Sequence record: MZ443783.1
Length of the DNA stretch: 64,000 nt
Strand: one strand, 5' to 3'
The position numbers and the translations under genes are program-made. This document shows, piece after piece, positions 12,267 to 32,013 of the stretch. Position 1 is the stretch's first letter, and every line of letters begins with the position of its first letter. The notes under the pieces are model-generated. The model was not told the origin of the DNA. It saw only the letters and a program-made list of their open reading frames with translations, and made no database searches.

Positions 12267-13037
12267 ATGAGCAACGTTGATAAAACAATGCCACAAGGTC
12301 GCTGGGAATTTAACGAACCAGTTGCTGCTGTCTTCGATAACATGTTGCAAAACTCCATTCCTTCGTATGACCGTATGCGTGACCTAACCTATCGTCTTGG
12401 TCGCCAGTTCGTAACTCCAGGTACGGCCATTGTTGATTTGGGCGCATCGCTTGGTCGCGCTATCGAACCCTTCTGCGCTGAGTTTGGTGAGTACCATTAT
12501 ATTCATGCTGCTGACCGCCCTGAGCCAGACCGTGAAATCGGCAATCATTATTGCTGTTATGAAGTCGCACCTGCAATGCTTGAGCGTCTTCGTCAAAACG
12601 AAGTGCTGGTCAACGCCAAAGCGAAAATCAGTAGTGAGTCGCTGGTTGAAGTCGATACTTTCCGCTTCGACGAGCAGGTTGAGTGCTCCCTGATTTTGAG
12701 TGTGCTGACTCTCCAGTTCACTCCTATCGAACATCGCCAACACATTCTGGAGAAAGTGTACGACTCTCTGGAGAAAGGCGGTGCTTTCATTCTGGTTGAG
12801 AAAGTGTTGGGTGACGACAACTTCCTTGACCGTTTGCTGGTAGACACCTACTACGGCATGAAGGGCGACAACGGTTATTCGCAGGAATCTATTGCGACTA
12901 AGCGCAAAGCTCTCGAAGGCGTACTGGTGCCTGTGAAAGCTGCATGGAACGAAGAACTGCTGCGTAAAGCAGGCTTCAACCGTGTGGAGTGTTTCTACCG
13001 CGACCTGAACTTTGCTGGATGGATCGCAGTCAAATAA
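12267..13037 (+). CDS. cmoA: CmoA-like carboxy-S-adenosylmethionine synthase
   Basis: WEFNEPVAAVFDNMLQNSIPSY, VDLGASLG, TLQF, GGAFILVEK, KGDNGYS, KRKALEGV (Arg equivalent to E. coli CmoA R199), AGF, LNF; colinear with E. coli CmoA as recalled. Confidence 0.88.
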   Translation: MSNVDKTMPQGRWEFNEPVAAVFDNMLQNSIPSYDRMRDLTYRLGRQFVTPGTAIVDLGASLGRAIEPFCAEFGEYHYIHAADRPEPDREIGNHYCCYEVAPAMLERLRQNEVLVNAKAKISSESLVEVDTFRFDEQVECSLILSVLTLQFTPIEHRQHILEKVYDSLEKGGAFILVEKVLGDDNFLDRLLVDTYYGMKGDNGYSQESIATKRKALEGVLVPVKAAWNEELLRKAGFNRVECFYRDLNFAGWIAVK

Positions 13038-13048
13038 GGTAAAACGAA

Positions 13049-14095
13049 ATGAGCGTAAGTGGTGATATTTATAACATCCCTCAACCGTTCGCCATGTATT
13101 GTGGCAACTGTGAAACTCGTGCTCAGGCAAAAGTTGCCTCAGGCACAATCGAATGGGCGTCAGAGAAAGTCTGCTGCGTTGTTGCCGACGATAACGGCCT
13201 GTTCCCTGATGTGCCTCACGTCAACATCGCAAGCGTCCATGCCACAGATGCACGTACTCTGGTAATTGGCTGTGCACCGTTCGGCGGTAAGATTGACGAG
13301 CACATGGACCGCACTATTCGCAGTGCTATCTATCGTGGTCTGAACGTTGCTGCCGCGATGCACAATCGCCTGGCCGATAATCCTGAATACGTTGCGCTGG
13401 CCGAACAGTATAACGTCAAGCTGTATGACTTCCGTCATCGTCCTGACGCGTACCCTCTCGGTACTGGTGAGAAGCGCAAAGGCATTCGTCTGCTGACTGT
13501 AGGTACCGATAGCTCTTGCGGTAAGAAGTTCACGACGCTGACGCTGCACCGCATCCTGAAAGAGATTCACGAAGACACCGTGTTCTGCTCAACTGGCCAG
13601 ACTGGTTTCCTGATCAGCAACTGTGGTATCAACAACGATACGCTGGTGGCCGATTTCCTTGCTGGCGCTGCTGAGTCTTTATCGCCTGATGGTCCTGATG
13701 ATCGTATCTATCTGATTGAAGGCCAGGGTGCTATTACTCACCCAGCGTATACTGGTGGCAGCATGAGCCTGATTGCTGGCTCGCAGCCTGACTACTTCAT
13801 CATGTGTCATGCGTGGGGCCGTAAGAATCAGCTCGGTGTTAAACGCGCACCTGACCTTGCTTTTGAACTAAAGGCCAATCTGGACGCAGCGGCCATTCAC
13901 GGTCTTACTCCTAAGTATCTAGGCATCAGTATCAACTTCTCCGAGAGTGGCCTGACCCTCGAAGAACAAGACGCTGAGATGTGCGCCCTGGAGGACCTGT
14001 ACGATATTCCAGTGTTCGACCCATCGCGTGATCGTATCGTCATCAAAGAGATGGCACACCATCTCAAGACGACTGTAATATTCAGGGGCAAGTAA
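13049..14095 (+). CDS. DUF1611 family protein (DgcN-like N-acetyltransferase / P-loop)
   Basis: LVIGCAPFGG, GLNVAAAMH, RLLTVGTDSSCGKKFTT, STGQTGFLI, DFLAGAAE, LIEGQGAITHPAY. Confidence 0.85.
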   Translation: MSVSGDIYNIPQPFAMYCGNCETRAQAKVASGTIEWASEKVCCVVADDNGLFPDVPHVNIASVHATDARTLVIGCAPFGGKIDEHMDRTIRSAIYRGLNVAAAMHNRLADNPEYVALAEQYNVKLYDFRHRPDAYPLGTGEKRKGIRLLTVGTDSSCGKKFTTLTLHRILKEIHEDTVFCSTGQTGFLISNCGINNDTLVADFLAGAAESLSPDGPDDRIYLIEGQGAITHPAYTGGSMSLIAGSQPDYFIMCHAWGRKNQLGVKRAPDLAFELKANLDAAAIHGLTPKYLGISINFSESGLTLEEQDAEMCALEDLYDIPVFDPSRDRIVIKEMAHHLKTTVIFRGK

Positions 14096-14096
14096 C

Positions 14097-14966
14097 ATGG
14101 CTAAACATCCTCTTCGCAAGCTGTTTGAACAGCACGTAAAGAAAGAGGTCAAAGCCAAAGAAGTGGCCGTTCTGCTTTCGAGCGGCCTCGATGGTTTGGT
14201 TAGCGCACTCGCGGCGCACGATCTCGGCATGAAGGTACACGCCTTTACTTTTCAGATGGGCGATGACCAGAGCTTCGATAGCAAACACGCTGCAATCGTA
14301 GCCCAGAAAATGGGCTGGGAGTTCACGCTCGTTAAGGTGCCAGACTCTGATAGTGCAATCGCCAAAGGCTGGAAGACGTTGCACAAGAGTTTCCGCTGCA
14401 TCAAAAAACGTGATTACGAGTGTGCGTACCCTATGGTGTACTGCTACAAAGCGATCAAAGATGCAGGCTTGAAATACGTGCTTAGTGGTCTGGTGGCTGA
14501 CGGTTACTTCCTGTATAACCGAAACACGCACATTCAGAAAGTAAGCGGCCCGCACTCTATCGCTGAAAAGTATCACGCGTACCGCACCGAATACTTCCGA
14601 CCGTGGATCAAAAGCGGTAAGAAGTCGCTCGGCGTTGACGGCTATAACCCGAGCGGTATGCTGCAACACGAATTGCTGTGTGACCACTTCGGCCTTGTTC
14701 ACGTTAACCCGTGGATGCAGCCGAAAGTATTTGATTACTTCATCAAGTACACATGGCAAGAGTTAAATATGCCTAAGCAGAAAATGCCAATAACAACGGC
14801 TTGGGCAGATCACATCGCAGTTGTTGGACATCGTCCACATCGCGGCTATCAAACAGAAGCTGGAGTGCCTGCGCACTTCGAACGCTTACTGGATAATCCT
14901 GAGATCAACTTCAACGGCCGCAAGCGCATCATGGACGTGGCCCGCGATTGGTCAACGAGGACTTAA
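14097..14966 (+). CDS. asparagine-synthetase C-terminal-like ATP-dependent amide ligase with no glutaminase domain
   Basis: PP-loop VLLSSGLDG, HAFTF..D..HAAIVAQKMG, KYVLSGLVADGYF (cf. VLSGEGxDE), NPWMQPKV (cf. PFLDxxV). Confidence 0.78.
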   Translation: MAKHPLRKLFEQHVKKEVKAKEVAVLLSSGLDGLVSALAAHDLGMKVHAFTFQMGDDQSFDSKHAAIVAQKMGWEFTLVKVPDSDSAIAKGWKTLHKSFRCIKKRDYECAYPMVYCYKAIKDAGLKYVLSGLVADGYFLYNRNTHIQKVSGPHSIAEKYHAYRTEYFRPWIKSGKKSLGVDGYNPSGMLQHELLCDHFGLVHVNPWMQPKVFDYFIKYTWQELNMPKQKMPITTAWADHIAVVGHRPHRGYQTEAGVPAHFERLLDNPEINFNGRKRIMDVARDWSTRT

Positions 14967-14967
14967 T

Positions 14968-15582
14968 ATGTTTGTACACATCATTGACGGTGGTATTGGT
15001 GGGTCTTATGTTGCTCACCAGTTAATGGAAGCTGGGTTTAAATGTCGCGTTCACTCTCCGAATAACAATCGTGTTCGGGCAGTACACGCGCCCTACCCTT
15101 CGCTCTCTATGGGTCACACTGAACAGGAAATTGAAAAGCATATCGGTAACGTGCTTGGTACGTTTCGCGGTCTGTTCCTGATCAGTAGCTACGTTGGTTC
15201 GTTAATCGCAAATCAGATGATCGATCAATGTGGTCAGAGTGGAAACATCATCACCTGTGACGATCTCAAGTGTGGTTCAATACCTGTTGTTGCTTCATCC
15301 ATTTCTGTAAACGTCTATAAGAAGCAAAGACAACTGGCACGTATCTCGCATCGCCTGAAACACTTCGACATTGACCACGAGTTCATTGTCGCGGATAAGG
15401 CTGTGCGTTTTGCTGCTGGTTCGGAGTATGATGAGCACGATGCTCGAAAGGAGTTTAACAACAACGCCAAATTCCTTTCGAGTCCGTCAATGATTGTTGC
15501 TGCACACAAACTCGGTGTGAAGAACAGTATGTACCACAACTATGCGGGACTGGTGCGCGAGTTTCTTGAGAAGCGCCAGTAG
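14968..15582 (+). CDS. unknown; N-terminus resembles glutamate racemase (DSGxGG) or a Rossmann dinucleotide-binding motif
   Basis: MFVHIIDGGIGGSYVAHQLMEAGF; ATG 2 nt after the previous stop; racemase catalytic Cys motifs not seen. Confidence 0.6.
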   Translation: MFVHIIDGGIGGSYVAHQLMEAGFKCRVHSPNNNRVRAVHAPYPSLSMGHTEQEIEKHIGNVLGTFRGLFLISSYVGSLIANQMIDQCGQSGNIITCDDLKCGSIPVVASSISVNVYKKQRQLARISHRLKHFDIDHEFIVADKAVRFAAGSEYDEHDARKEFNNNAKFLSSPSMIVAAHKLGVKNSMYHNYAGLVREFLEKRQ

Positions 15583-15600
15583 CAGTAACGCGAGGGCACG

Positions 15601-15864
15601 ATGATTAATCGCTTTCAATTGAAGAAAGTTCCGACGCTCGAAGCGTGTCAATGGAACGGGGAGAACGTCGAGGAGATGCAGAAGTTCATCGACGGTCACG
15701 GTTATGTTGTTGGGCGTTATGTCCAGATTGGTGTGCTCGATGAATATCGCAAGCCGTCTATTGCTAACGTGTCTGTAGGCAACTACGCAGTTAAGCACGA
15801 AGACGGTCGGTTCGATGCGATGACAGCAAGCGAACTGATGGACAAATACGTTCTGGCGGATTGA
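15601..15864 (+). CDS. conserved small phage protein (EAxQWxGxN type)
   Basis: LEACQWNGENVEE motif, GAGGG RBS. Confidence 0.65.
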   Translation: MINRFQLKKVPTLEACQWNGENVEEMQKFIDGHGYVVGRYVQIGVLDEYRKPSIANVSVGNYAVKHEDGRFDAMTASELMDKYVLAD

Positions 15865-15871
15865 GGGCATA

Positions 15872-16327
15872 ATGAATCTGTTTTCTATTTTAAAGCAACA
15901 GGTAAAGAAAGCGCTGTCCACCGAAGCGAATCACGAACCAGAGATTCGTGCGTTGTTCGACTGGCGCTACTCTGTTGAGATCAAAGGCCAGATGTACATT
16001 GTCGGTAAGACTGGAGCAAACACTTGCTTCTATGTCGAGCCTGGTACTGACGAGCCGATTGCGTGTTACCCTGATGCGCTGCTGGAGAAGATTGACCAGT
16101 GGGGCGGAAGCAAGTACGTGTCATATTCGATCTTCTTTAAACGCTTCGATAGCCCAGTTGCCGAGAACATCAAAACTCTCGAAAAGGCAATGAGCGGTAA
16201 GCCCAAGTCATACAAGAAAGGCTACTTCATCTGTGGCGTGACGCCGAAAGGTAAGCGTGTGAAACTCTATCGCTTGCAACAAGGTCTGTCTGGTATGCAG
16301 TGGGTAGCTGTGGAGAAACAAGCATGA
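15872..16327 (+). CDS. hypothetical protein
   Basis: GAGGG RBS, packed. Confidence 0.65.
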   Translation: MNLFSILKQQVKKALSTEANHEPEIRALFDWRYSVEIKGQMYIVGKTGANTCFYVEPGTDEPIACYPDALLEKIDQWGGSKYVSYSIFFKRFDSPVAENIKTLEKAMSGKPKSYKKGYFICGVTPKGKRVKLYRLQQGLSGMQWVAVEKQA

Positions 16328-16533
16328 GTAAGCGCATTCAATTTCTTTTGTCCTGTAGCGCGTTTGTCTCAGGCTTGTTCTTGACTCTGGTGATCTTCGC
16401 TCTGATTGTGTTCAATGTGGTTATGGACATATCGAAGGAAGTAACCACGCCGCTGTTGATCGTTCTCGTTGTCTGTTTTATTAACAACATGTCAACGGTG
16501 TTCTTGATGCGGACCAACAACTCTAAATCGTAA
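16324..16533 (+). CDS. small two-TM membrane protein
   Basis: ATGA overlap; two hydrophobic segments. Confidence 0.6.
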   Translation: MSKRIQFLLSCSAFVSGLFLTLVIFALIVFNVVMDISKEVTTPLLIVLVVCFINNMSTVFLMRTNNSKS

Positions 16534-16562
16534 CGCGCGGTCTGTCCGTGTGAGGAGCAAGT

Positions 16563-16856
16563 ATGATTAGTGACATTACAGTCGGCCATATCTACAAGTC
16601 GCCTAGCGACAAGCCATTTATTGTTGACTGCATTGCTGCACACGGACAGGATTGCTCACTGCCTATGGTTGTCTATCGTAATCTCGAACCTACATCAGAC
16701 AGCCCTGCTAATAGCGTGTGGGTAATCCCAGAATCGTTGTTTGTGATGCAGTTCTCTGAGTACGAATCAGGAGAGCACCATGAACACAACGAGCTTGTAT
16801 CGTCATCTGGAATCAAGGGGATTTGCTCCTTCTTCCTATCACTGTTGGCTAAGTGA
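16563..16856 (+). CDS. DUF1653-like small beta-barrel protein
   Basis: GHIYKS..FIVDCIA..MVVYRNL..VWVIPESLF; GAGGAG RBS. Confidence 0.6.
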   Translation: MISDITVGHIYKSPSDKPFIVDCIAAHGQDCSLPMVVYRNLEPTSDSPANSVWVIPESLFVMQFSEYESGEHHEHNELVSSSGIKGICSFFLSLLAK

Positions 16857-17296
16857 AACGCAAATGACCGTGCCGCTGTTTGGCTTTGATAGAGCTATGC
16901 GCGGTCTACAGGTCTACACGCCAGATGCACCAAAGCACGATAAGAATCCAAAAGAGTGTCGCTACTTCACGCGAGCATTCGGTGGCAAGCAGTTGGTGTG
17001 GGGATCGGAAATTAAACCTGAACGGGTCGACCGTATTCTTAACTGAGTCTGTGTTCAAGGCGTGTGCGCTACATCGTCTTGGACTCAATGCTTGGTCCGT
17101 TCTCGGGTCTAATGTGAGTGAGCATCTGTACCATCAGCTTCGACTTCTTGGTCTACGTTTCGTCTGTCTTGGCGATAACGATAAAGCAGGACTGGAGTTT
17201 AGTCAGACGTTCGGACTAGGCGCGGTCAGTGCGGATCTTGATGAGATGACTGATGAGCAGTTGCTTGATTTAACTTTACCCTTCGTAAGGAAATAG
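16780..17296 (+). pseudogene. Toprim primase-like gene split by a +1 frameshift near 17011
   Basis: Frame A ends RYFT..LVWGSE; frame B continues LNLNGSTVFLTESVFKA..CLGDNDKAG (Toprim E and DxD). Confidence 0.65.
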
Positions 17297-17298
17297 AA

Positions 17299-17727
17299 AT
17301 GTCACGCGAAGTTATCGTCCGTATCTTAGGCCCTGTTGGTGCTGGCAAGTCTGCTGTGTATGCAACTCTGGTCAAAGCGCTGACTCAAATCGGTGTTGAC
17401 GTCAAACATGCCGATGAGAAAGCGTGGAAGTCTCTGGAGAACGCAGGCGAAGTTGCGCTGTCTACCGAAACGCTGAACGAACTCACACCTGTTGTGACGT
17501 TTGAAGAAGCTGGTATTCGCACTGATGCGTCCGCAAGCCAGAACTCTATCATGCAGTTCTTTGCTTATGCGCATCTTCCGCCGCACCTGCAAGCTGTGAG
17601 CAAACCGTTCGCGTTGCTGGCACAAGAGATGGATCAGAACCTTCCACAAGGTCCTGAGAAGTCTGCTGGTCTGCGCAAGCTGCTTGAGGCGAAAGACTGC
17701 ATGGTTCGCCAGCTCGTTTCCAAATGA
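17299..17727 (+). CDS. fusion of a short P-loop segment and a helical-hairpin domain
   Basis: GPVGAGKS at the N-terminus; C-terminal QFFAYAHLP..PEKSAGLRKLLEAKDC. Confidence 0.6.
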   Translation: MSREVIVRILGPVGAGKSAVYATLVKALTQIGVDVKHADEKAWKSLENAGEVALSTETLNELTPVVTFEEAGIRTDASASQNSIMQFFAYAHLPPHLQAVSKPFALLAQEMDQNLPQGPEKSAGLRKLLEAKDCMVRQLVSK

Positions 17728-18047
17728 GTCTCGATCTCTTAGTGCCGCCTATCGGTCTGGAGCGCATTGAGTATCGTAACTACAACTACGACAATGTTAG
17801 CCTCAACATTTTGAACATCATTAGCGTAGTGCCGAGCGCATTCAAGTCATATCCTGATAATGAAGGCACTCCGTCTATTGCATTCGAAATACGTGGGCGA
17901 GAGAAGCCTGTCCACTGGATTATCCCTAAAGGGAAGTACGGTGCGAACGCTACGGCGTTGCGGGACAGACTACTCCATCGTTTGCAGACAGGTGGCTATT
18001 CGCATTTGGTGGCTGCTGACGAACTGATCGCTGACTTACAGAAATAA
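17724..18047 (+). CDS. hypothetical protein
   Basis: ATGA overlap, followed by a terminator. Confidence 0.6.
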   Translation: MSLDLLVPPIGLERIEYRNYNYDNVSLNILNIISVVPSAFKSYPDNEGTPSIAFEIRGREKPVHWIIPKGKYGANATALRDRLLHRLQTGGYSHLVAADELIADLQK

Positions 18048-18051
18048 CCCA

Positions 18052-18076
18052 AGGGTGGCCATTAGGCTGCCCTTTT
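18052..18076 (+). terminator. intrinsic terminator
   Basis: AGGGTGGCC-ATTA-GGCTGCCCT followed by TTT. Confidence 0.8.
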
Positions 18077-18201
18077 CTGATCTTAGACAACTAAAACAAG
18101 CCCATAAGGACAGAGTAGAACCGTGCGTAAAGCGTATAAAACCATGTGTAGGCAGCGTAGAAACACCACCTTTTTCTTGAGCAGTGGGAAGCGCTTAAAA
18201 A

Positions 18202-18215
18202 CTGTAAATACTGAT
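18202..18215 (+). promoter_or_regulatory. putative promoter motif CTGTAAATACTGAT
   Basis: Recurs at 34135 and 43175, each upstream of a gene start. Confidence 0.45.
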
Positions 18216-18228
18216 AAAGGAGAGAAAA

Positions 18229-19071
18229 ATGACAGTAATCAGCCCAATCCGATATCAGGGCAATAAGCGAAGCCTTATCCCGATTATTCTTGAGCACACG
18301 CCTTCTGTGCAGGACTGCCCTCGCATGGTGGACGTGTTTGGTGGTAGTGCTACTGTTTGCGCGAACATGCCGCAGAAGTTTCGCGTCTACAATGAACTGA
18401 GTCCGCAGGTGTACGATATCGTTAAGATGTTAGTCGAACAGGACCCGAAGAAAACTCTTGGTCAGGTCAAGCGACTGGTCAAACATTGGTGTTTGACTAA
18501 CAGCAACGAAGCGAACTACGATGCGTTTCGTACCGTCGTTCAGAAGAAGCGTACGGCTATACTGCATTACGTTGCACATCGCCACGCACACTCGAACATG
18601 TTGCGCTTCAATCAACAAGGTGTGTACAACGTAGGCTTTGGTGATCGCGGTCTGATTGGTAAGTTCGATGAACTGGAACACGAACTCACTACATTCCACA
18701 AACATATGCAGGGCGTTCACCTGACGAACATGAAGTACGGTAAGTTGCTTGGACGTTTAGGCCACCAGCTTGACTGTAACACGTTCTGCTACTTCGACCC
18801 ACCTTATTTGGCAAGCGGTGCGATGCAGTATGGTAAGTGGACCGAGCAGAATGAACGCAACCTGCTTACGACTCTGGAGCAGTTGAATCGTCGCGGCGTT
18901 CCCTGGATGTTGAGCAACGTTATCGAGCACCGTGAGTTCTCCAACGACCTGTTAAAGCGCTGGTTAAAGAAACATGCGACAACCGTGCTCTATCCAAACA
19001 AAAGCTATGCGATGAACAATGGCCAGAGCGGCTCGCATGGCACGATTGAAATTCTGGCAATGAACTATTGA
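18229..19071 (+). CDS. dam: Dam-like DNA N6-adenine methyltransferase (D12 class)
   Basis: SPIRYQGNK, VDVFGGSATV, YFDPPY, WMLSN, EIL..NY; GATC specificity not established. Confidence 0.85.
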   Translation: MTVISPIRYQGNKRSLIPIILEHTPSVQDCPRMVDVFGGSATVCANMPQKFRVYNELSPQVYDIVKMLVEQDPKKTLGQVKRLVKHWCLTNSNEANYDAFRTVVQKKRTAILHYVAHRHAHSNMLRFNQQGVYNVGFGDRGLIGKFDELEHELTTFHKHMQGVHLTNMKYGKLLGRLGHQLDCNTFCYFDPPYLASGAMQYGKWTEQNERNLLTTLEQLNRRGVPWMLSNVIEHREFSNDLLKRWLKKHATTVLYPNKSYAMNNGQSGSHGTIEILAMNY

Positions 19072-19078
19072 GGCTGCT

Positions 19079-19384
19079 ATGACTCTGCGTACAAACCAAA
19101 AACTTATCTTCATCTTAAAGGCTCTAACGCGCAAGTTAGAGGAGGTCAACGCTCTCGCCTGGTCAATATCGAAAGATCCCAAAGACACTTGCGGAGCTAT
19201 TGATATGTCGGCCATATCTGACTACTCAGATGAAGGTCTGATCAAAGAAATTGAAATGCGCGCCAATCAAATCGAAGAACGTAAGCGATACATTGCGAGT
19301 CTTCATGGTGGCGCTGATGGCCACTGCCGTGCTGCGAATAATCAGGCTGATGCAATCTATCAACGTTATTGTGGGAAAAGATAA
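19079..19384 (+). CDS. hypothetical protein
   Basis: GAGG RBS. Confidence 0.6.
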   Translation: MTLRTNQKLIFILKALTRKLEEVNALAWSISKDPKDTCGAIDMSAISDYSDEGLIKEIEMRANQIEERKRYIASLHGGADGHCRAANNQADAIYQRYCGKR

Positions 19385-20088: not shown

Positions 20089-20551
20089 TGAACTGCGTAG
20101 TCGTCTTGCGGCTGCGCTCGATCTGGAAGTGAAGACAGCACCGACGGCTGATATCGAATACTACGTTGACTCAGACGGTCTGCCTATGGGCTTGGTGCAG
20201 GAGTGGCGTCCTGATGCTCCTGAGAAAATCATTCAGGTCATCGAACAGTATGGTCTGCGCGTTGAGCGTGTTGTCAAGCCTGGTCTACCTAAGCCTGTCG
20301 ATGCAGATAATATTCAGTGGGTGTTCAATGTCTGGTCGCGTCATCCTGTGTATCGTACTCTGTCCTCTGATGAATTTATACATCAGGGTGGTCCTCGCAT
20401 TGAAGGTGAGACTTTGACAATGGCGGTATTGACGTGGGCAGTTCTTCGAGCAGAGCGCATTAAACGGCTGAAAGCTGATCGCACTATGTCTAAGGCATAT
20501 AACTTCAATGTATTGCGGGAGCGTGTGTATGTATCTGCCGTTGGGGGATAA
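20075..20551 (+). CDS. hypothetical protein
   Basis: GAGG RBS. Confidence 0.6.
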   Translation: MPGINELRSRLAAALDLEVKTAPTADIEYYVDSDGLPMGLVQEWRPDAPEKIIQVIEQYGLRVERVVKPGLPKPVDADNIQWVFNVWSRHPVYRTLSSDEFIHQGGPRIEGETLTMAVLTWAVLRAERIKRLKADRTMSKAYNFNVLRERVYVSAVGG

Positions 20552-20939: not shown

Positions 20940-21445
20940 CCGAACTACCAATGTCTGCGGAGCAGGCCGAACACATCATGGCGAGTGTGTTTACTCTGGC
21001 CGGTGCTTCTAAATCCAAGCGCCGTGCGACTGCTGCAATGCTCATTCATTTTCATGACGGCTTCCCTACTATTATCAGTAGCGGTGTCAACGGTACTATG
21101 CCCGGCGAAAGCAACGTCATGGAAACTCCTGACCTGACTCTCTCGCTCAACACTGTTATCCATGCAGAGGTGAACTGCCTCAATCGCATGGAAGAATACA
21201 GTCTGTGGGCAAACGAACAGGACATTCTGTTCTGCACTGATTCGCCGTGTCCTAACTGCTTGGCGGATCTCGAAGCCGAAGGTGTGAAGACCGTTGTGTA
21301 TGCGCGTGAGTATCGCCTGACTGATCATCTGGACGCATCTTCGATTAAGATGTTCTGTCTGGATATGAAGTCCGTTGAGCACCGTATGCTTCGCGGTATC
21401 GAGCGCATGAACGAAGTTATCGCAACAACACCAGCGTCTGAATAA
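20924..21445 (+). CDS. dCMP deaminase
   Basis: SSGVNG, VIHAEVN, TDSPCPNC, VVYAREY. Confidence 0.85.
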   Translation: MRCNLTELPMSAEQAEHIMASVFTLAGASKSKRRATAAMLIHFHDGFPTIISSGVNGTMPGESNVMETPDLTLSLNTVIHAEVNCLNRMEEYSLWANEQDILFCTDSPCPNCLADLEAEGVKTVVYAREYRLTDHLDASSIKMFCLDMKSVEHRMLRGIERMNEVIATTPASE

Positions 21446-21466
21446 GACCAATAAGAGGTACTAACC

Positions 21467-22815: not shown

Positions 22816-22856
22816 CTCATGGGGCCTAGTGCCCCATTTCTGTTTTGGGGAATTTT

Positions 22857-23396: not shown

Positions 23397-23399
23397 TCG

Positions 23400-24636: not shown

Positions 24637-24955
24637 GTACGTGATGTTCGTTCGCACTCGCACCAAAGAGCGCGACGACGGTGTTCACATGCCAGTCATC
24701 TTCCCGACTCATATCATGCACTCCGATATGGGTGAAGCTATGATCGGCTACGCTATTCAGAACGGCATGATCGAAAACAAATACTATCAGCGCATGACTG
24801 CGGTTAGTGCTGGCTTCATCGATCTGAATGACCTGCGTTGTTTCGGTGAGTCTGAATCTCTGGAACTCAAGTCTCGTGAGCAGGACAGCGAGATCATCCG
24901 TGAGTACATGAAGACTCAAGGCAAAGGCGCTCCTGTTCCTGAGGTGGAAGAATGA
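24629..24955 (+). CDS. hypothetical protein; start uncertain
   Basis: Packed ORF; IFP..IMHSDM..VSAGF. Confidence 0.6.
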   Translation: MFKYVMFVRTRTKERDDGVHMPVIFPTHIMHSDMGEAMIGYAIQNGMIENKYYQRMTAVSAGFIDLNDLRCFGESESLELKSREQDSEIIREYMKTQGKGAPVPEVEE

Positions 24956-25440
24956 GCATAGCAGGAAAAGTCGATAGCGTTAAAAACCAACGCGAGTCTG
25001 AACGTAAGGCTAAAGAAGAAACTTTCCGCGCTGCCTGTCAGGCTCTCATTCCTAAAGTCGCGTCTGATATGGACGGCTTGCTTCTGCACTTCGTTAGCGC
25101 GAACGTTAATAGTGACCGCATTGTACTCGGTACGCCAAAGTACACTATCTGCGACTACAGATTCAAGCTGACCATCACCGTTGACTTCCACGAAAACCGC
25201 GACACGCAGTTCACTGTCGAGCTGGCGCCTGATGGTCCGTTCACGCTGATCAAAGATCGTGTGCGTCAACGCCCGTGGTTCCTGCGCGACATTACGCTCA
25301 TGCCATACGAAGACGCTCTCTCCGAAATGATGTACCATGCTGTGGAGAAATCATTTGCAGGTAATGAGTGGCGCGACCGTTACGGTCCGAATCTCGGCTC
25401 AAGTGATGTAATATTCTCGCACCTGTATCTGAGGTCCTGA
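24952..25440 (+). CDS. hypothetical protein
   Basis: ATGA overlap. Confidence 0.6.
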   Translation: MSIAGKVDSVKNQRESERKAKEETFRAACQALIPKVASDMDGLLLHFVSANVNSDRIVLGTPKYTICDYRFKLTITVDFHENRDTQFTVELAPDGPFTLIKDRVRQRPWFLRDITLMPYEDALSEMMYHAVEKSFAGNEWRDRYGPNLGSSDVIFSHLYLRS

Positions 25441-25820
25441 TGAAAGAAGTCCTGTTAGCAATCTGGAACAGCCCGTTCTGGGACAAACCTGTCAGCGCAT
25501 TCGTTGTGCCTGCGTTTGTCATCACCTGGTTTATATGGACAGAGTATCGTGAGCGCCGTGAATTGCGTTTGTCTCGTGCGGTGTTTGCAACAGGCTGGGC
25601 ACCTGTGAAAGGGACAATGTACCGTCACCGCTATCTGCCTTGGCGTACCTGTCGTTTGTGCTATACTGTAAATAGTCCTAACGACAAGTTCATCCCTTCT
25701 GTCTTCATTGAAATCATAGGCGGCTCATACAAAGAATTGACCGCTCATAGTTTCTGTACATCTTACAAAGAGATTGAAAATGCCAACTCCAGTGATTCTT
25801 CTCAAGCAGCAAACTCGTGA
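25440..25820 (+). CDS. membrane-anchored hypothetical protein
   Basis: TGATG overlap; TM around residues 18-33. Confidence 0.6.
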   Translation: MKEVLLAIWNSPFWDKPVSAFVVPAFVITWFIWTEYRERRELRLSRAVFATGWAPVKGTMYRHRYLPWRTCRLCYTVNSPNDKFIPSVFIEIIGGSYKELTAHSFCTSYKEIENANSSDSSQAANS

Positions 25821-26124
25821 CCTGCTGGTAAAGATGTTCGGCCAGAACAAGCCATTCATCGTCGTGCGCCGTGACGCTATCGTGGAGAACGAAAAGCGTT
25901 TTGGTGATCGCGTTTACTTCTCTAATGGCGTTAACACCGTCACTGTGCCAAACATTCAAGGGCTTGACCTGGGTGATAAGCTCTACATTGCAGAAGACGG
26001 CGATGTGTATGAGTGGCATCCGCACTTCGAGCGCCCTTACGAAGCAGTATCGAACAACCAGACAGAAGCTCTGGCGTTTGGTCTGCATCCCATTGTCTTC
26101 CACACCGACACACGGAACAGCTAA
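25780..26124 (+). CDS. hypothetical protein
   Basis: Packed, coupled to thyA. Confidence 0.55.
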   Translation: MPTPVILLKQQTRDLLVKMFGQNKPFIVVRRDAIVENEKRFGDRVYFSNGVNTVTVPNIQGLDLGDKLYIAEDGDVYEWHPHFERPYEAVSNNQTEALAFGLHPIVFHTDTRNS

Positions 26125-27221
26125 TGTCACAACCACTTGATTTACGAAACCCGAACCACTACGAACTGTACTCTCTCCATAGCGTGGACGAGCAGTATAT
26201 CAACCTGTGCGATGCAATCATTGCTACTGGTACGCAAGAGTCCGATGCTGGTCGCACCGACGATACGTGGACGACTCTGATTGGCGTTGGCTTCCAGTTG
26301 CAGAACACGCACATTGCTTTCCCTGCGTTGCTATCCGCACGTAAGAACTGGAGCGCAGCCGTCGATGAGATGTGCTGGATGGCTCGCGGTGAAACGAACA
26401 TCAACACTCTCGGCTCTAAGATCTGGGACGAGTGGGCAGATGAAAGCGGTGAGTGCGGTCCAATCTATGGCGAGATGTGGCGCCGTTGGCCTGACATTAA
26501 AGCGTTCTTCGACTACACGCAGCCTATGGCGTCTTGCCCTACTGCCGATGTTATTCGTGTGCGTGACGAAATCCTGCGTATGCGTCAGGACGGCTATATC
26601 GAAACGCAACTGACTGACGGTCGCATCCTGTTTGAAGGTGAGATTGACCAGTTCGCTAACGCTCTGTATCACATTGAAAACCGTTCGCGTTCTCGCCGCA
26701 TTCGTGTGCAGGGTTTCAACCCAAGCTATGTGAACATGCAGGGTCTTCCTCCGTGTCACACTGAGTTTGAGTTCAACGTAACGAAGTCCACCAAGTACGA
26801 ACAGGCGCAGGCCGATGCCCGCGGTCAGACGGTAGCGCAGGACAGTCTGCATATCACTGTCACCATGCGCAGCAACGACTGCCTGCTTGGGCGTCCTTTC
26901 AACATCATCGGTTACAGTGCGATGCACCAACTGATTGCGAAGTGGGCTGGCCTGAACGTTGGCGGCTTTACGCTGAATACGACGAACACGCACCTGTACG
27001 ATCATCACCGTGAAGCATACGCCAAACAGCGTGAGCAGTGGATGACGTTGCGCGAGCGTATGCAAACAACTGGCGAGCCTGTGAAATATCCTGTGCTCGA
27101 AATCTCCGATGATGTTATCGGTCTGACAGCTAAAGAACTGCTGGACAACGTTAACATCGACTGGTTCGAGCTGGTGGACTACAGCCCGCTGCCAGCAGTA
27201 AAAGGACGTGTGACCAAATGA
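26124..27221 (+). CDS. thyA: thymidylate synthase
   Basis: EMCW, IWDEWAD, GPIYG, SRR, LPPCH, RSNDCLLGRPFNI, HLYDHH. Confidence 0.9.
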   Translation: MSQPLDLRNPNHYELYSLHSVDEQYINLCDAIIATGTQESDAGRTDDTWTTLIGVGFQLQNTHIAFPALLSARKNWSAAVDEMCWMARGETNINTLGSKIWDEWADESGECGPIYGEMWRRWPDIKAFFDYTQPMASCPTADVIRVRDEILRMRQDGYIETQLTDGRILFEGEIDQFANALYHIENRSRSRRIRVQGFNPSYVNMQGLPPCHTEFEFNVTKSTKYEQAQADARGQTVAQDSLHITVTMRSNDCLLGRPFNIIGYSAMHQLIAKWAGLNVGGFTLNTTNTHLYDHHREAYAKQREQWMTLRERMQTTGEPVKYPVLEISDDVIGLTAKELLDNVNIDWFELVDYSPLPAVKGRVTK

Positions 27222-27865
27222 AAAATTTCATGCTGATCCAACGTATCAGTTCCTACCTGTACTTAGGCTTCGCAGAGAACATCCCTGACATTCCTCGTCG
27301 CGGTGTTGAGCAGTTTGAAGTCATCATCCCAGACGGGCGTGATGGTGACAATGAGCCGATTCTTCGAATGAAGGCGCGTTGTATCTATCACCTGCCACAC
27401 AACTGTTTCCTTATCAGTGCTGTTCCAGGCACCGAGTGCGAAGAATATCCTGCCTTGATGAAGTCGCACTGTGCGCACAACATGGAATTGTTCCAGCGTT
27501 CGGAGCATGGCCGTGAGCAGATTGCAGTCAAGCAAATTCTGAATGAACTGCATGACGCCGAAGTGCAGCACCCTGACTGGCCAGAAGAATGTATTCACGC
27601 TGCATCAATCGTTACAGAAGAAGCTGGTGAGTTGCTGCGCGACTGTGCAACCTTCGAAGAAAACGGTGACGACCGCCTGATTCTTAACATGCTGGGTGAG
27701 GCCACTCAGGTCGGTGCAATGGCCGTTCGCTTCATGAAGAACCTGCCGTTCAGCCAAAAGCGTACTATCCCAAACAAAGCGTTGCGCTCAATCCTTGACT
27801 CTGACATGACACCAGAGCAACAACTGATTGAAGTGCGTCGTCTAATGAATGACGGAGTTCGTTAA
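27218..27865 (+). CDS. MazG-like NTP pyrophosphohydrolase domain protein
   Basis: C-terminal half ASIVTEEAGELL..GEATQVGAMAVRF. Confidence 0.6.
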   Translation: MKNFMLIQRISSYLYLGFAENIPDIPRRGVEQFEVIIPDGRDGDNEPILRMKARCIYHLPHNCFLISAVPGTECEEYPALMKSHCAHNMELFQRSEHGREQIAVKQILNELHDAEVQHPDWPEECIHAASIVTEEAGELLRDCATFEENGDDRLILNMLGEATQVGAMAVRFMKNLPFSQKRTIPNKALRSILDSDMTPEQQLIEVRRLMNDGVR

Positions 27866-28755
27866 TGCGTTTACTTAGTTATGGTGCCTGTGGCGGTGAA
27901 CCCTTTCGCCGTCTGATTGTAGAAGACAACGGCCTGCTTGAAATCGGTGTGCATCCAGAAATCAAAGCATTCGGTTGCGTCTTCACAAACGTTAACGTTG
28001 GTCGTCGCATTGATGGCACTGCTGAACTCGATCTGCCTGATGCGAAAGACTGGTCTATCGAAATGGCTGACTACTTCCTGTCGCCAGAGTACAAGCAGTG
28101 GGTAGGCGGTCATACACCACGTATCGAAACGATGCTGGATGCGCACGTCATCAAAGGCAAGCTGCCGACACTGGTGCAGGACTTCGATGCGTTCTATGCT
28201 GACCTGCAACAAAAGATCAACGCACTCAATCTGCCTGACATTGTGTTTGAACATAACAGGATTAAGCAGACGAACCTGAACCAACAGTTCGATGTGTGGA
28301 TGCTGTACAAGTACAACCTGATGCTTGACGGCAAGATCTCTGTTACTCGTTCGAATCTCGGCGAGCTGGTCTTCCAAGAAGACTTCATCTCGGCGAAAGG
28401 TACAACGTGGTGGCTGCGTGAGCACAACAAACAACTAATGGCACTGGCGGCAAAGCACGACATGCTGGCGGCATTCATTACGTTCGGTACGTCCCATCGC
28501 AATGAGCGTGAGTTCTTCTACTCGTTTATCACGCACGAAGGTGATACGTCACATCGACCTGTTGATCCGGCGGAGTTCATGCACCTGTCTGTTCATGGTC
28601 AGTTCCCAGAGCTGGTCATCACCGACGAAGGTGAAGGGTATCGTTTGTCTGTGAACTACGGGCAATACTTCCCCAAAGCGTATCTCGATCTCCAGGCGGC
28701 GACCAACATCACTATCGGCAGCAACTACGCGCTTAACCTCTTGCGCTTTATCTGA
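27865..28755 (+). CDS. hypothetical protein
   Basis: 296-aa ORF, TAATG coupling. Confidence 0.65.
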   Translation: MRLLSYGACGGEPFRRLIVEDNGLLEIGVHPEIKAFGCVFTNVNVGRRIDGTAELDLPDAKDWSIEMADYFLSPEYKQWVGGHTPRIETMLDAHVIKGKLPTLVQDFDAFYADLQQKINALNLPDIVFEHNRIKQTNLNQQFDVWMLYKYNLMLDGKISVTRSNLGELVFQEDFISAKGTTWWLREHNKQLMALAAKHDMLAAFITFGTSHRNEREFFYSFITHEGDTSHRPVDPAEFMHLSVHGQFPELVITDEGEGYRLSVNYGQYFPKAYLDLQAATNITIGSNYALNLLRFI

Positions 28756-28761
28756 CGGTGC

Positions 28762-28804
28762 CGAGTCTCCCTCAGTAATTTAACCTTCTACAAAGGGAGA
28801 CTCG
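28762..28804 (+). promoter_or_regulatory. RBS-sequestering hairpin with a TAATTT motif in the loop
   Basis: Perfect 11-bp inverted repeat CGAGTCTCCCT / AGGGAGACTCG, 21-nt loop; 3' arm contains the AGGGAG SD of the 28807 gene. Confidence 0.7.
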
Positions 28805-28806
28805 CC

Positions 28807-29142
28807 ATGCAATACGATAAGACGAAAGACTATCAGCCGTTCAAATACCTGGGTGCGCCTAAGCTGCCTAACGTGGGCTTCATCGCCAGCACTGTAACAC
28901 TCGTCGAAAATGACGTGAACATCGGTGAAGACGAATGCGAGTTTGTATTTACGGTAGAGCAGATGAACTCGCTAGACCGAGGAACGATGACCTTCCGCGC
29001 GAAAGATGCAGGTGGAGGCATCAGTATTAAGAAATGCTCAGTCTCTGGATTGAAAATGGTAATTAAGCTGGAACGACGCGTAGTGCAGTTCGGCAAAGTT
29101 CAAGTCGAGTGGGCTACGACCAGCCGTAAATATCTTTATTAA
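28807..29142 (+). CDS. hypothetical beta-rich protein, possibly late
   Basis: 111-aa ORF behind the hairpin. Confidence 0.65.
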   Translation: MQYDKTKDYQPFKYLGAPKLPNVGFIASTVTLVENDVNIGEDECEFVFTVEQMNSLDRGTMTFRAKDAGGGISIKKCSVSGLKMVIKLERRVVQFGKVQVEWATTSRKYLY

Positions 29143-29183
29143 TCTGTAAAGACAGAGAAAGAGCAACCACAAGAGAAACGATA

Positions 29184-29882
29184 ATGGCAAAAATTGCTAA
29201 AACAAAGGAAGGGAAAAAGAAAAGCGCGATGAAGTTTGACTTGAAAACGCTCAAGACTTCACAACTGAAAGGCGCTGACTACAACCCTCGTTTCATTACA
29301 GACAGCCGCCTGAAAGCACTCGAAAGTTCTTTGGGTAGCTTCGGCGATCTGTCTGGCATCGTCTTCAACAACAGTGTCAAAAGCGGCGTATTGATCTCTG
29401 GTCACCAGCGTCTGAAATCCATCGACGGATGGAAGACTCGCATTGAGATTCAGAAAGCCGCCGACCAACACGGTACTGTAGCTCTGGGTTATATCCACGC
29501 TACGCACCCGAAGAAAGCCGAGAAGGTCATCAGCATCCCGTTGCGTATCGTTAACTGGACTGATAAGAAAGCTGAGTACGCTGCGAACATCGCGGCGAAC
29601 GCCCACGGTGGTGAGTTCGATAACAAGAAACTCGCCAAGCTGGTGGAGAAGCTGGACTTGACCACCATCAAGCCTCAGTTGCTGGGTCTTGACCCACTTG
29701 AGATTCGCGGCCTTCAACAAAAGCTGAAAGGTCAGGCTGCGGTTGTAGCTCAAGAGCGTGTCGGTAAAACTACAGGCCAGATGAACGGTAGTAGCGGTGC
29801 GTTCAAAGAGTATGGTACGGACGAAGTAGGTGAGAGTCTGAACTGCACCTGCCCGCGCTGTGGATTTAAGTTCGAGGGATAA
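29184..29882 (+). CDS. ParB/Srx-N domain protein with a C-terminal Zn ribbon
   Basis: LKGADYNPR, GIVFN, LISGHQRL, ANIAAN..GEFD, CTCPRCGFKF. Confidence 0.8.
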   Translation: MAKIAKTKEGKKKSAMKFDLKTLKTSQLKGADYNPRFITDSRLKALESSLGSFGDLSGIVFNNSVKSGVLISGHQRLKSIDGWKTRIEIQKAADQHGTVALGYIHATHPKKAEKVISIPLRIVNWTDKKAEYAANIAANAHGGEFDNKKLAKLVEKLDLTTIKPQLLGLDPLEIRGLQQKLKGQAAVVAQERVGKTTGQMNGSSGAFKEYGTDEVGESLNCTCPRCGFKFEG

Positions 29883-29883
29883 T

Positions 29884-32013
29884 ATGATCATCAAGCCGCC
29901 TACTATGAAGGAAATCAACAAGCTGGATAAACCCTGGCGTGGTATGAGTTTCTTCGCAGGTTGCGGTGGATCTTCTACCGGTCACAAGATGGCCGGTATC
30001 AACATCCTGTTGAGTAACGAGTTCGTGGATAGTGCCCGCGAGTCTTACGAAGCAAACCATCCGACTACTAAAGTGCTGCCGCATGATATTCGTCGTCTGG
30101 ACCCAAGCAAGCTCATGCGTTATTGCGGCTTGGCGAAAGGCGAACTGGATTTACTTGACGGCAGTCCTCCGTGCTTCACCGAAGACACCATCATTCATAC
30201 AGCAGACGGCATGAAGTTCATCTCGGACATGAATGTCGGCGATCAAGCAATGACCTCTGTTGGTCGTTACTTCCCTGTGTACGATACTATGGTTCGTCCG
30301 TACGTCGGCACGATGCACAAAATCGAAACTCTGCTGGGCGCAAACAACGCTACACCAGAGCATCCGTTCTTTGTCAGACGCAGCATTCCTACTGGCGGTT
30401 ACACTGACCCGTTCTGGTGTGATGCGAAAGACGTTCAGGAAGGTGATCTGTTAGGTAGCCCACGCACTACGCCTGACATGGGACTCGACGTGTATCAGTC
30501 GCAACTCGATCAGCTGCCGAAGCAGATTGCAGAGTGGAGCACATTCCCTGAGTTCTGGTGGATGGTTGGACACTGGTGTGATCGCGGTTCGATTGAAACC
30601 GTGAGTGGTGTTGAAGTCGTTAGCTTTGAATCTCACTCAAGCCTCGAAAATGCAATGATTGAGCAGGCGTTTGACGCGCTGAAAATCAGCAGCCTGAACC
30701 GTATCGACACGATGACAGCACAACGCAAAACGTTCCGTATCGTTATGGACGCAGAGCTGGTGCAGTTCTTACGTCGATTCGTATCTCAGGGTAACAACAA
30801 GTTCTCTCGTCGTCTGCCTGCGATTGTCTTCCACCTGACAGTCGAGTTGAAGCAACAATTCATTCTCGGTTGTGCTGGTCATGACTATGTGACTGGTATG
30901 GGTACCGGCTTGGCGATCACCTCAGATAGCCGTCGCTTCCTGATTGAGTTGAACTACCTGTGCTGTTCTGCATTCAACAGACCGCTGTTCGATGGTCTGA
31001 CTTGGGGCGACGTTTACTTCGGCAGCCCGATGACTCCGCGTGATCGTAACAGTGCTAAGCCTCTCATTGGCTTCCTGTTCCTGCAGGACGAGCACAACTT
31101 CTTCCACGAGTTCGATGACGCTGACCCGCATTTGTGGGTAGAAGTGATTGAGAACCTCGCGTATCAGGCAACCTGTGACGTGTATAACTTCTCCGTTGAG
31201 ACGGACGAGACATACGTTGCAAACAGCATGGTCGTTCACAACTGCAAAGGCTTCTCTACTGCTGGTGTGAAGGAAGAAGGCTGGGGCAAGGAAGTTAAAT
31301 ACAGCGACAACAAGTATCAGCAGGTAGATGACCTGTTCGATCAGTATTGTCGTATGCTGGAAGGCATGAAGCCGAAGGTGTTCACTGCGGAAAACGTGAG
31401 CGGCCTTGTGAAAGGTGCATCGAAAGGTTACTTCCTTGAAATCATGAAGGAGTTCGATCGAATCGGTTATTACGTCCGTGCGCCTATGCTCAATGCTGCG
31501 TGGCTCGGTGTGCCGCAATCGCGTGAGCGTATAATCTTCATGGGTGTACGCAAAGATGTTGCACACGCACTTGGTTACAAGACCGCTGCGACCGCTGTGC
31601 CGAATGTTATTCCGTGTGACAGCATGGCGTTCCTTGCCGATGCTCTGCCGCACATCCTGCGCTACAAGTCCACGAAGAAAGATATCATCACCTATCTTCC
31701 TGCGATGAACGGACCGATGCCTACGATTACTGCTGCCGATGCGATTGCATATGAGACTGCACGTTTCTCGTCTGCGGGATTCGTCGAAGACAACAAAGGC
31801 CATCGCCGTAAGCTGACTATCGACGAACTCAAAGTGATATCGGGTTTGCCCTCAGACTACAAACTGAAAGGCAAATTCGAAGAACAGTGGGAACGTCTTG
31901 GTCGTATCTGTGTGCCAGCAATGACACACGCCGCCGCTAAAGCGCTCATCGAACACGTCCTGATTCCTTACGCGAAGAAACGTAAGAAGAAGCCAGGCGA
32001 TATCTTTAAGTAA
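29884..32013 (+). CDS. C5-cytosine DNA methyltransferase homologue, intein-containing; candidate carboxymethyltransferase
   Basis: Motif I FFAGCGG, motif IV GSPP/CKGFS after splicing, VI AENVSGL, VIII PQSRERIIF, IX LTIDELKVISGLP, X ERLGRICVP. Confidence 0.88.
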   Translation: MIIKPPTMKEINKLDKPWRGMSFFAGCGGSSTGHKMAGINILLSNEFVDSARESYEANHPTTKVLPHDIRRLDPSKLMRYCGLAKGELDLLDGSPPCFTEDTIIHTADGMKFISDMNVGDQAMTSVGRYFPVYDTMVRPYVGTMHKIETLLGANNATPEHPFFVRRSIPTGGYTDPFWCDAKDVQEGDLLGSPRTTPDMGLDVYQSQLDQLPKQIAEWSTFPEFWWMVGHWCDRGSIETVSGVEVVSFESHSSLENAMIEQAFDALKISSLNRIDTMTAQRKTFRIVMDAELVQFLRRFVSQGNNKFSRRLPAIVFHLTVELKQQFILGCAGHDYVTGMGTGLAITSDSRRFLIELNYLCCSAFNRPLFDGLTWGDVYFGSPMTPRDRNSAKPLIGFLFLQDEHNFFHEFDDADPHLWVEVIENLAYQATCDVYNFSVETDETYVANSMVVHNCKGFSTAGVKEEGWGKEVKYSDNKYQQVDDLFDQYCRMLEGMKPKVFTAENVSGLVKGASKGYFLEIMKEFDRIGYYVRAPMLNAAWLGVPQSRERIIFMGVRKDVAHALGYKTAATAVPNVIPCDSMAFLADALPHILRYKSTKKDIITYLPAMNGPMPTITAADAIAYETARFSSAGFVEDNKGHRRKLTIDELKVISGLPSDYKLKGKFEEQWERLGRICVPAMTHAAAKALIEHVLIPYAKKRKKKPGDIFK
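30172..31242 (+). mobile_element. intein (357 aa) with degenerate LAGLIDADG blocks
   Basis: Starts CFTEDT, ATPEHPFFV, VYNFSVE..TYVAN, ends VVHN, +1 Cys; HEN remnants WMVGHWCDRGS and FILGCAGHD. Confidence 0.92.

Follow-up and report, generated by a model that had tools for sequence, protein, structure and literature searches.

The stretch of DNA analysed here (hereafter the window) comprises 64,000 nucleotides of sequence record MZ443783.1 and corresponds, with 100% identity, to the first 64 kb of the 267-kb genome of Erwinia phage pEa_SNUABM_28. This phage is a jumbo myovirus, belongs to the genus Alexandravirus and has Erwinia amylovora as its host. Every gene of MZ443783.1 is annotated as "hypothetical protein" in the GenBank record. 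At two loci of the window, 13.6 kb apart, lie genes for homologues of CmoA, which makes carboxy-S-adenosylmethionine (carboxy-SAM), of CmoX, a DNA cytosine-C5 methyltransferase (C5-MTase) homologue, and of CmoY, an ATP-dependent amide ligase. A DUF1611 protein, a ParB-like protein and two small proteins are encoded beside them. We consider it likely, on the homologies described below, that the two loci form one CmoA/CmoX/CmoY-type system for the post-replicative hypermodification of cytosine.

Enzymes of this type were described in the Synechococcus phage S-B43 by Yang et al. (Nat Commun 2025, December 2025; PMC12783734). In that phage, SpCmoA makes carboxy-SAM, and SpCmoX transfers the carboxymethyl group to the C5 of cytosine, giving 5-carboxymethylcytosine (5cxmC). 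SpCmoX uses only carboxy-SAM, has an SPPC motif and needs Arg350, which stands in place of the motif-X Asn (structure 8YF3). SpCmoY, an asparagine-synthase-like ligase, then adds glycine to 5cxmC and completes the ligation alone. 5cxmC blocks HhaI. The same paper found 5,615 candidate CmoX proteins in phage data, often with CmoA, a ligase and a ParB-domain neighbour (PMC12783734).

Predicted enzymes of the two loci

The CmoA homologue matched the Escherichia coli CmoA structure 4GEK over its full length (1.4e-30), and the E. coli and Haemophilus CmoA structures 4GEK, 4IWN and 1IM8 together gave E-values of 1e-30 to 1e-26. It also matched phrog_4752 (2.7e-82) and is 30% identical to SpCmoA. The ratio of nonsynonymous to synonymous substitution rates (dN/dS) of its gene was 0.065, within the range of 0.04-0.15 found for the genes of the system, all of which are under purifying selection. 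The cellular role of CmoA is in tRNA modification. No CmoB was seen among the scanned genes of the window or in the annotation of the syntenic region of phage AD1.

The best Protein Data Bank (PDB) match of the C5-MTase homologue was SpCmoX (8YF3, 7.6e-54), followed by M.HaeIII (1.4e-17); M.HhaI gave 5e-8. The protein matched Pfam DNA_methylase (1.7e-38) and scored 118.8 bits on TIGR00675, over the cut-off of 100.65. Its N-terminal part is 53% identical to residues 22-98 of SpCmoX. We located the SPPC, ENV and QxRxR motifs and the motif X "GR", of which SPPC is complete only across the junction of an intein (see below). The Arg of the motif-X "GR", in the part of the protein that follows the intein, aligns with Arg350 of SpCmoX, where ordinary C5-MTases have Asn. 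The three motifs and the equivalent of Arg350 are also kept in phage Y3, in Pseudomonas phage PaBG and in the uncultured contigs L019, L021, L031 and L032. Judged from its sequence, the window protein is thus a CmoX-type enzyme, nearer to SpCmoX than to the methyl-transferring C5-MTases.

The ligase is 33% identical to SpCmoY (4e-50), which is also its nearest relative outside the clade in a set of 50,697 phage records. It matched positions 2-132 of the Asn_synthase profile and positions 235-388 of the 517 of TIGR01536, which correspond to the PP-loop synthetase half only. A glutaminase domain was not found with the Pfam and NCBIfam models. An assignment of the ligase to the QueC-type 7-deazaguanine enzymes was rejected, since its matches to QueC were marginal (1e-3) against the 4e-50 to SpCmoY.

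The gene immediately before the cmoX homologue encodes a protein that matched phrog_620, "ParB-like partition protein" (1e-32), and phrog_498, the N-terminus of ParB-fused MTases (9e-21). The profile of its family weakly matched the N-terminal domain of Helicobacter pylori ParB (4UMK, E 0.0084), with the NPR and GG(H/E)xR motifs aligned. Pfam ParB_N was matched by 4 of the 44 relatives. The protein itself had no Pfam match even at E 5, and a PDB search with the single sequence was empty. In PaBG, in the four contigs named above and in a fifth, L042, the ParB-like gene also directly precedes cmoX.

These assignments agree with a reading made earlier from the sequence alone (hereafter the sequence-only reading). 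All of the genes that it named lie where it had placed them, with bounds equal to those of the GenBank coding sequences, which are given in Table 1 for every gene except that of the 151-residue protein. Its identification of the CmoA homologue, the DUF1611 protein and a glutaminase-less AsnB-like ligase is borne out by the Pfam, NCBIfam and PDB matches. The coupling that it saw between a ParB-like gene and a C5-MTase homologue takes the form of a 1-nucleotide spacer, which also separates the DUF1611 gene from the ligase gene and the latter from the gene of the 204-residue protein. Its remark that cmoB was not visible in the window also stands for the genes that were scanned.

Table 1. Features of the two loci in the window (aa, amino acids)
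Feature	Position	Strand	Basis
cmoA homologue, 256 aa, predicted carboxy-SAM synthase	12267..13037	+	CmoA structure and model matches
DUF1611/DgcN-like protein, 348 aa, predicted accessory enzyme	13049..14095	+	Pfam, NCBIfam, PDB 7XRJ
cmoY-like ATP-dependent amide ligase, 289 aa, type "A"	14097..14966	+	SpCmoY homology
204-aa protein without family, syntenic neighbour, membership doubtful	14968..15582	+	synteny
151-aa protein, phrog_23597, strictly co-occurring	15872..16327	+	phyletic pattern
Divergent ParB N-terminal-domain-like protein, 232 aa	29184..29882	+	PHROG and family profile
cmoX precursor with intein, 709 aa	29884..32013	+	best PDB match 8YF3
CmoX N-extein, aa 1-96, ends ...GSPP	29884..30171	+	alignment to SpCmoX
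Class-1-type intein, aa 97-453, 357 aa	30172..31242	+	intein models, splicing residues
CmoX C-extein, aa 454-709, starts with Cys454	31243..32013	+	alignment to SpCmoX

The intein of the CmoX precursor

The N-terminal alignment of the precursor to SpCmoX stops at Pro-Pro-Cys97, and the C-terminal alignment resumes at Cys454. Since Cys97 and Cys454 both align with the catalytic Cys98 of SpCmoX, the position of the intein is exactly that of the catalytic Cys of motif IV. The bounds of the intein were set by intein-free orthologues. Within them we found an N-terminal Cys, a Thr-x-x-His block and a terminal His-Asn, followed by Cys454 as the +1 residue. The intein scored 22.3 bits on TIGR01443, the model of the intein C-terminal region, over its cut-off of 15.6, and its matches to Pfam Hint_2 and Intein_splicing were below the gathering scores. 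No LAGLIDADG, HNH or other nuclease family was matched by the central ~200 residues at E up to 5. Cys454, the first residue of the C-extein, is the predicted nucleophile of the mature enzyme, and the unspliced precursor would therefore be without an intact SPPC motif.

Each of the 51 records of the clade of Erwinia, Dickeya and Yersinia phages has an intein at this very site. The identity among these inteins ranges from 100% down to 34%, and that of the C-extein is at least 72%. The distant contig L021 also carries an intein at this site. It is missing from the CmoX of PaBG, S-B43 and the contigs L019, L031, L032 and L042. The dN/dS of the intein was 0.10-0.13, which indicates purifying selection, and the splicing residues are intact. 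These facts show an old and fixed intein, whose +1 Cys appears to double as the nucleophile of the predicted DNA-modifying enzyme.

Two other putative inteins were noticed. Escherichia phage A4 (ON286972.1, a 355-kb jumbo phage of E. coli) has, at 292878-293915, a cytosine methyltransferase gene with a distantly related intein (22% identity). In the window, residues 226-405 of the 942-residue homologue of the terminase large subunit (2540-5368, + strand) matched Intein_splicing with an E-value of 5e-5, which does not reach the Pfam cut-off. The window would then have a second intein, in agreement with a remark on terminase inteins in the PaBG paper.

Co-occurrence, accessory genes and the ligase cassette

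The JA11-type Dickeya relatives, whose portal protein is 70% identical, are without CmoA, the DUF1611 protein, the ligase, the 151-residue protein, the ParB-like protein and CmoX together. The same pattern of presence and absence is listed in Table 5 of the AD1 authors (PMC6143709). In PaBG, the ParB-like, CmoX, CmoA, 150-residue and ligase genes stand in one block (PaBG_00176-00180). Compact blocks of ParB-like, CmoX, DUF1611, ligase and CmoA genes were found in the five uncultured contigs (L019, L021, L031, L032 and L042), which are unrelated to one another; in L042 the block is followed by the 151-residue gene. Because the genes are absent together in the JA11 type and contiguous in PaBG and the five contigs, we regard the two loci as one system, and the split layout in the window as a derived arrangement of the same set. 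The functional link that the sequence-only reading drew between loci about 14 kb apart is thus supported, and the co-occurrence across related phages, which it named as a check, was found: CmoA, CmoX and the ligase are present or absent together. A radical SAM protein (AD1_267/Y3_272) is likewise present in AD1 and Y3 and absent in JA11 (PMC6143709 Table 5).

The DUF1611 protein matched Pfam DUF1611_N (2e-18) and DUF1611 (DUF1611_C, 6e-46). It consists of a Rossmann-like N domain and a dethiobiotin-synthetase-like P-loop domain. By sequence it matched PDB 7XRJ, deposited as "N-acetyltransferase DgcN" (7e-52), whose conserved motifs it shares over the full length. The predicted model, which had a mean predicted local distance difference test score (pLDDT) of 93.9, matched the same structure by fold (9.7e-31). 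Apart from DUF1611 structures, the nearest folds of the model were dethiobiotin synthetase, cobyrinic acid a,c-diamide synthase and CTP synthase.

DUF1611 was found in 34 of the 50,697 phage records. All 34 are from cultured members of this clade and have the gene between cmoA and the ligase gene. A type-A ligase is likewise carried by 34 records. Homologues from metagenomic phages, down to 36% identity, stand directly upstream of a CmoY-like ligase, and in some phages an alanine-racemase-like gene sits between the two. A scan of IMG/VR with the single DUF1611 protein gave isolates only, and an alignment-based scan added L031 and L032; matches at 29% identity (L033-L039) were without cmo genes and were set aside. 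In total, no fewer than eight phage lineages that are independent of one another (36-66% identity) have DUF1611 next to the ligase. The bacterial homologues (36-39% identity) adjoin instead a racemase of the enolase superfamily (MR_MLE), which is the DgcN/DgcA arrangement. DUF1611 therefore recurs as an accessory in one subclass of the cmo systems, and its conserved position directly upstream of the ligase supports it as a component of the system.

The segment between cmoA and the gene of the 204-residue protein is variable. In pEa_SNUABM_2 (L040), CmoA is 98% identical to that of the window, the ligase is only 23% identical, and there is no DUF1611. Aligned as DNA, the two phages cease to match precisely with the cmoA stop codon and match again from where the 204-residue gene begins. 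The alternative content of this slot is a ligase of type "B", alone, as in pEa_SNUABM_2, or followed by a 2-oxoglutarate (2OG)-Fe(II) oxygenase, as in Y3 (L007 3438-5233). Upstream of ligase A, SNUABM_1 carries glycosyltransferase-like, DUF1611 and alanine-racemase-like genes (L003 2774-6008), and SNUABM_13 (L004) carries glycosyltransferase-like and DUF1611 genes only. The pattern suggests that a common carboxymethyl handle is decorated differently from one related phage to another.

Two further genes were noticed directly after the ligase gene in two other sequences of uncultured phages, L015 and L020. In L015, 10943-11806 encodes an AroFGH-type 3-deoxy-D-arabino-heptulosonate 7-phosphate (DAHP) synthase (TIGR00034, 180 bits, over the equivalog cut-off). 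DAHP synthase is the first enzyme of the shikimate pathway, a route that leads to prephenate, the co-substrate of CmoA. The L015 enzyme may therefore boost the supply of prephenate for carboxy-SAM synthesis. In L020, the gene at 10899-11375 is similar to GmrSD_N, the N-terminal domain of a type IV restriction enzyme.

The gene of the 151-residue protein had been overlooked in the sequence-only reading. The protein occurs in 53 phage records, the same set as the CmoX of the clade. In PaBG, Y3, SNUABM_13, SNUABM_5, L015 and the five contigs, a homologue is encoded within or next to the cmo cluster, and the gene was near every non-cyanophage cmo cluster examined. With a dN/dS of 0.036 it is more constrained than any other gene of the set. 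Searches with the family profile and with its individual members gave no credible PDB or Pfam match.

The 204-residue protein matched nothing in Pfam, NCBIfam or PHROG, and its AF2 model, made with 15 relatives, was unusable (pLDDT 43.5). It is conserved in Y3 (61%) and SNUABM_5 (25%). Since its gene sits immediately beyond the exchanged segment, and neither the SNUABM_13 group nor PaBG nor any of the compact clusters has it, we leave the protein out of the core of the system. The sequence-only reading had taken both this protein and the DUF1611 protein as components, which is supported for the latter and not for the former.

The interval between the two loci holds ordinary early genes, among them those of a D12-class Dam methyltransferase (18229-19071, + strand), a protein with a dCMP/cytidine deaminase domain (20951-21445, + strand) and a thymidylate synthase of 365 residues (26124-27221, + strand), which exceeds the E. 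coli enzymes that it matched (264 residues) by about 100 residues. The last resembles canonical ThyA, not a hydroxymethylase, and dCMP hydroxymethylase was absent among its 60 listed PDB matches. A replacement of cytosine at the nucleotide level, which would prevent transfer to C5, was considered and rejected on account of this match to canonical thymidylate synthases. Scans for sigma-70 promoters and for terminators around both loci gave sites no more numerous than in shuffled sequence. Farther downstream, 39672-40346 (+ strand) encodes a protein with an HD_4 domain (3e-11). In AD1, the orthologue bears the annotation GTP pyrophosphokinase, and the window protein may be an enzyme related to guanosine tetra- and pentaphosphate, (p)ppGpp.

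Proposed pathway, alternatives and known systems

The pathway that we favour can be set out as follows. (1) CmoA would convert SAM and host prephenate into carboxy-SAM. (2) The CmoX precursor would first excise its 357-residue intein, joining ...SPP to Cys454 and thus forming the SPPC motif. (3) Mature CmoX would flip the cytosine out, its Cys would attack C6, and the carboxymethyl group of carboxy-SAM would pass to C5, with the motif-X Arg holding the carboxylate; the product would be 5cxmC at a short motif. The ParB-like partner probably aids the engagement of DNA. (4) The glutaminase-less ligase would adenylate the new carboxylate and couple an amine to it, for which an alpha-amino acid is the likeliest candidate. 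The DgcN-like DUF1611 protein would act as a unit with the ligase. Most likely it would transfer an acyl group to the alpha-amino nitrogen of a (D-)amino acid, either one already built into the side chain or one added to it later. The end product would thereby be other than the glycine amide of S-B43. The 151-residue protein is a putative obligatory partner, and the hypermodified DNA would resist host restriction enzymes.

Steps 1-4 are drawn from homology to the S-B43 enzymes, and the parts assigned to the DUF1611 and 151-residue proteins from gene neighbourhood. The order CmoA, C5-MTase homologue and amidating ligase had been proposed in the sequence-only reading. It is supported by the three homologues and the diagnostic Arg and is the same as the biochemistry of S-B43. 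That reading had also mentioned a report of 5cxmC in a cyanophage and suspected that the core chemistry might not be new. It was right on both counts, since the core chemistry was published in December 2025 (PMC12783734). The text of that paper makes no mention of Erwinia, jumbo phages, inteins or DUF1611. The position of DUF1611, the 151-residue partner, the intein at the catalytic Cys and the swapping of cassettes are undescribed there, and our searches of the literature brought up neither a CmoX intein nor a link between DUF1611 and DNA modification.

Several facts weigh against the favoured pathway. The CmoA homologue scored 146.7 bits on TIGR00740 (9e-43), below the equivalog cut-off of 193.3 bits. 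The biochemically proven SpCmoA scored lower still, at 115.6 bits, and the cut-off is therefore non-discriminating for the phage proteins. The DUF1611 protein scored 280 bits on the NCBIfam model of DgcN (NF041892), the equivalog cut-off of which is 480; it is a DgcN homologue with the same fold, not an equivalog. DgcN is the only enzyme of the DUF1611 family to have been characterised and, according to its PDB and NCBIfam names and to two citing papers, transfers an acetyl group to free D-glutamate. A role on substrates linked to DNA would be an extrapolation. Ligases without DUF1611 exist that are 47% identical to DUF1611-associated ones (Y3 versus L032). Because such close relatives occur without it, DUF1611 is dispensable for ligation itself. 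Finally, our literature searches found no chemical analysis and no report of modification for the DNA of pEa_SNUABM_28 or its relatives.

With the core as described, DUF1611 could be a second ATP-dependent ligase of carboxylates and amines, with an acyl phosphate as its intermediate, after the model of dethiobiotin synthetase and cobyrinic acid a,c-diamide synthase. It would then attach another amine to the carboxylate left free on the amino acid that the CmoY-like ligase had joined, to give a dipeptide-like side chain. The nearest folds outside DUF1611 in the predicted model, namely these two enzymes and CTP synthase, would be consistent with such a role, as would the GTDxxxGK P-loop, which is invariant in the phage clade. 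However, the sole characterised member, 7XRJ, was deposited as an N-acetyltransferase, and the phage protein shares its motifs over the full length. We regard a second ligase as unlikely.

It is also conceivable that the reaction is split between the two proteins. The ligase would only activate the 5-carboxymethyl group, as an adenylate or a coenzyme A (CoA) thioester, and the DgcN-like enzyme would transfer it to the amino group of a D-amino acid, provided in some phages by the alanine-racemase-like gene. A D-amino acid amide of 5cxmC is formally an N-(substituted acetyl)-D-amino acid, that is, a member of the product class of DgcN. Furthermore, DUF1611 always stands directly upstream of the ligase gene or, where a racemase-like gene comes before the ligase, of that gene, and a racemase-like gene often lies between DUF1611 and the ligase. 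Nevertheless, SpCmoY alone completes the ligation (PMC12783734), and near relatives of the DUF1611-associated ligases occur without DUF1611, which makes a split reaction improbable.

If the end product were 5cxmC glycine amide or a simple amide, the DUF1611, 151-residue and 204-residue proteins would be unrelated to it and might serve, for example, host metabolism. The identity of 33% between the ligase and SpCmoY is in line with such a product. This, too, seems improbable to us, because DUF1611 stands beside the ligase in at least eight lineages, the pattern of the 151-residue protein equals that of CmoX, and both are under strong purifying selection. That the MTase is an ordinary 5-methylcytosine enzyme, with CmoA serving tRNA modification (uridine 5-oxyacetic acid, cmo5U), as in cells, or acting as a SAM sink against host defences, as raised for SAM depletion in the discussion of PMC12783734, is very improbable, given that the motif-X Arg is as in SpCmoX, which uses only carboxy-SAM, and that CmoA, CmoX and the ligase share their gains, losses and clustering.

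The CmoA/CmoX/CmoY pathway may be taken a step further. We propose, tentatively and as a joint claim that falls somewhat short of probable, that DUF1611 and the 151-residue protein define a widespread cmo subclass with a new cytosine hypermodification, a swappable "chemistry cassette" and splicing-dependent carboxymethylation. If so, the end product might be an N-acylated or D-amino-acid-containing amide. The cassette would consist of the ligase with a DUF1611, racemase-like, glycosyltransferase-like or 2OG oxygenase gene, and near-identical sister phages would carry different DNA decorations.

Only since December 2025 has 5-carboxymethylcytosine been known as a natural base of DNA, and from a single cyanophage. 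The locus analysed here would place the system in well-sampled, culturable jumbo phages of Erwinia, Dickeya and Yersinia. Their natural sister genomes, which differ almost only in the ligase cassette, offer a ready comparative series for relating gene content to DNA chemistry. Two conserved and undescribed partners, the DgcN-like DUF1611 protein and the 151-residue protein, are flagged, and DUF1611 would gain a second biological context besides D-glutamate catabolism. These phages are considered for the biocontrol of fire blight, and the probable hypermodification bears on the reading of sequencing and restriction mapping and on the evasion of host defences.

Compared with known systems, the window is most readily set beside S-B43. 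Homologues of all three enzymes are present (CmoA 30%, CmoX 31-53% and CmoY 33% identity), as are the SPPC motif, the Arg350 position and the glutaminase-less ligase; a ParB-domain neighbour of CmoX is known from many contigs of the same paper. The window differs in that its genes lie at two loci, its CmoX carries an intein, and DUF1611 (between cmoA and the ligase gene) and the 151-residue gene, neither of which is in the S-B43 locus, are present. The host of S-B43 is cyanobacterial, whereas that of the window phage is an enterobacterial plant pathogen. PaBG has the same ParB-like, CmoX, CmoA, 150-residue and ligase families, but its set is contiguous, lacks the intein and DUF1611, and has a ligase of type "B". 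The engineered M.MpeI N374K (cited in PMC12783734) also has a basic residue for the motif-X Asn and accepts carboxy-SAM; the window enzyme is natural, belongs to another lineage and has Arg instead of Lys.

The DUF1611 protein shares full-length homology, fold and motifs with DgcN of the DgcN/DgcA D-glutamate pathway. The phage gene, however, pairs with a CmoY-like ligase, with or without a pyridoxal-phosphate alanine-racemase-like gene, whereas the bacterial gene pairs with an enolase-type racemase. With the bacterial CmoA/CmoB pathway to tRNA cmo5U34 the window shares the CmoA fold and the predicted synthesis of carboxy-SAM, but its predicted acceptor is the C5 of DNA cytosine, reached through a C5-MTase homologue. 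In the 5-hydroxymethyl-pyrimidine clusters of phages, a reactive handle is placed on the base and is then elaborated by variable tailoring enzymes that are exchanged as cassettes. The system proposed here would follow the same logic of handle and decoration, although its handle would be a carboxylate derived post-replicatively from carboxy-SAM and not a hydroxymethyl group introduced at the nucleotide level.

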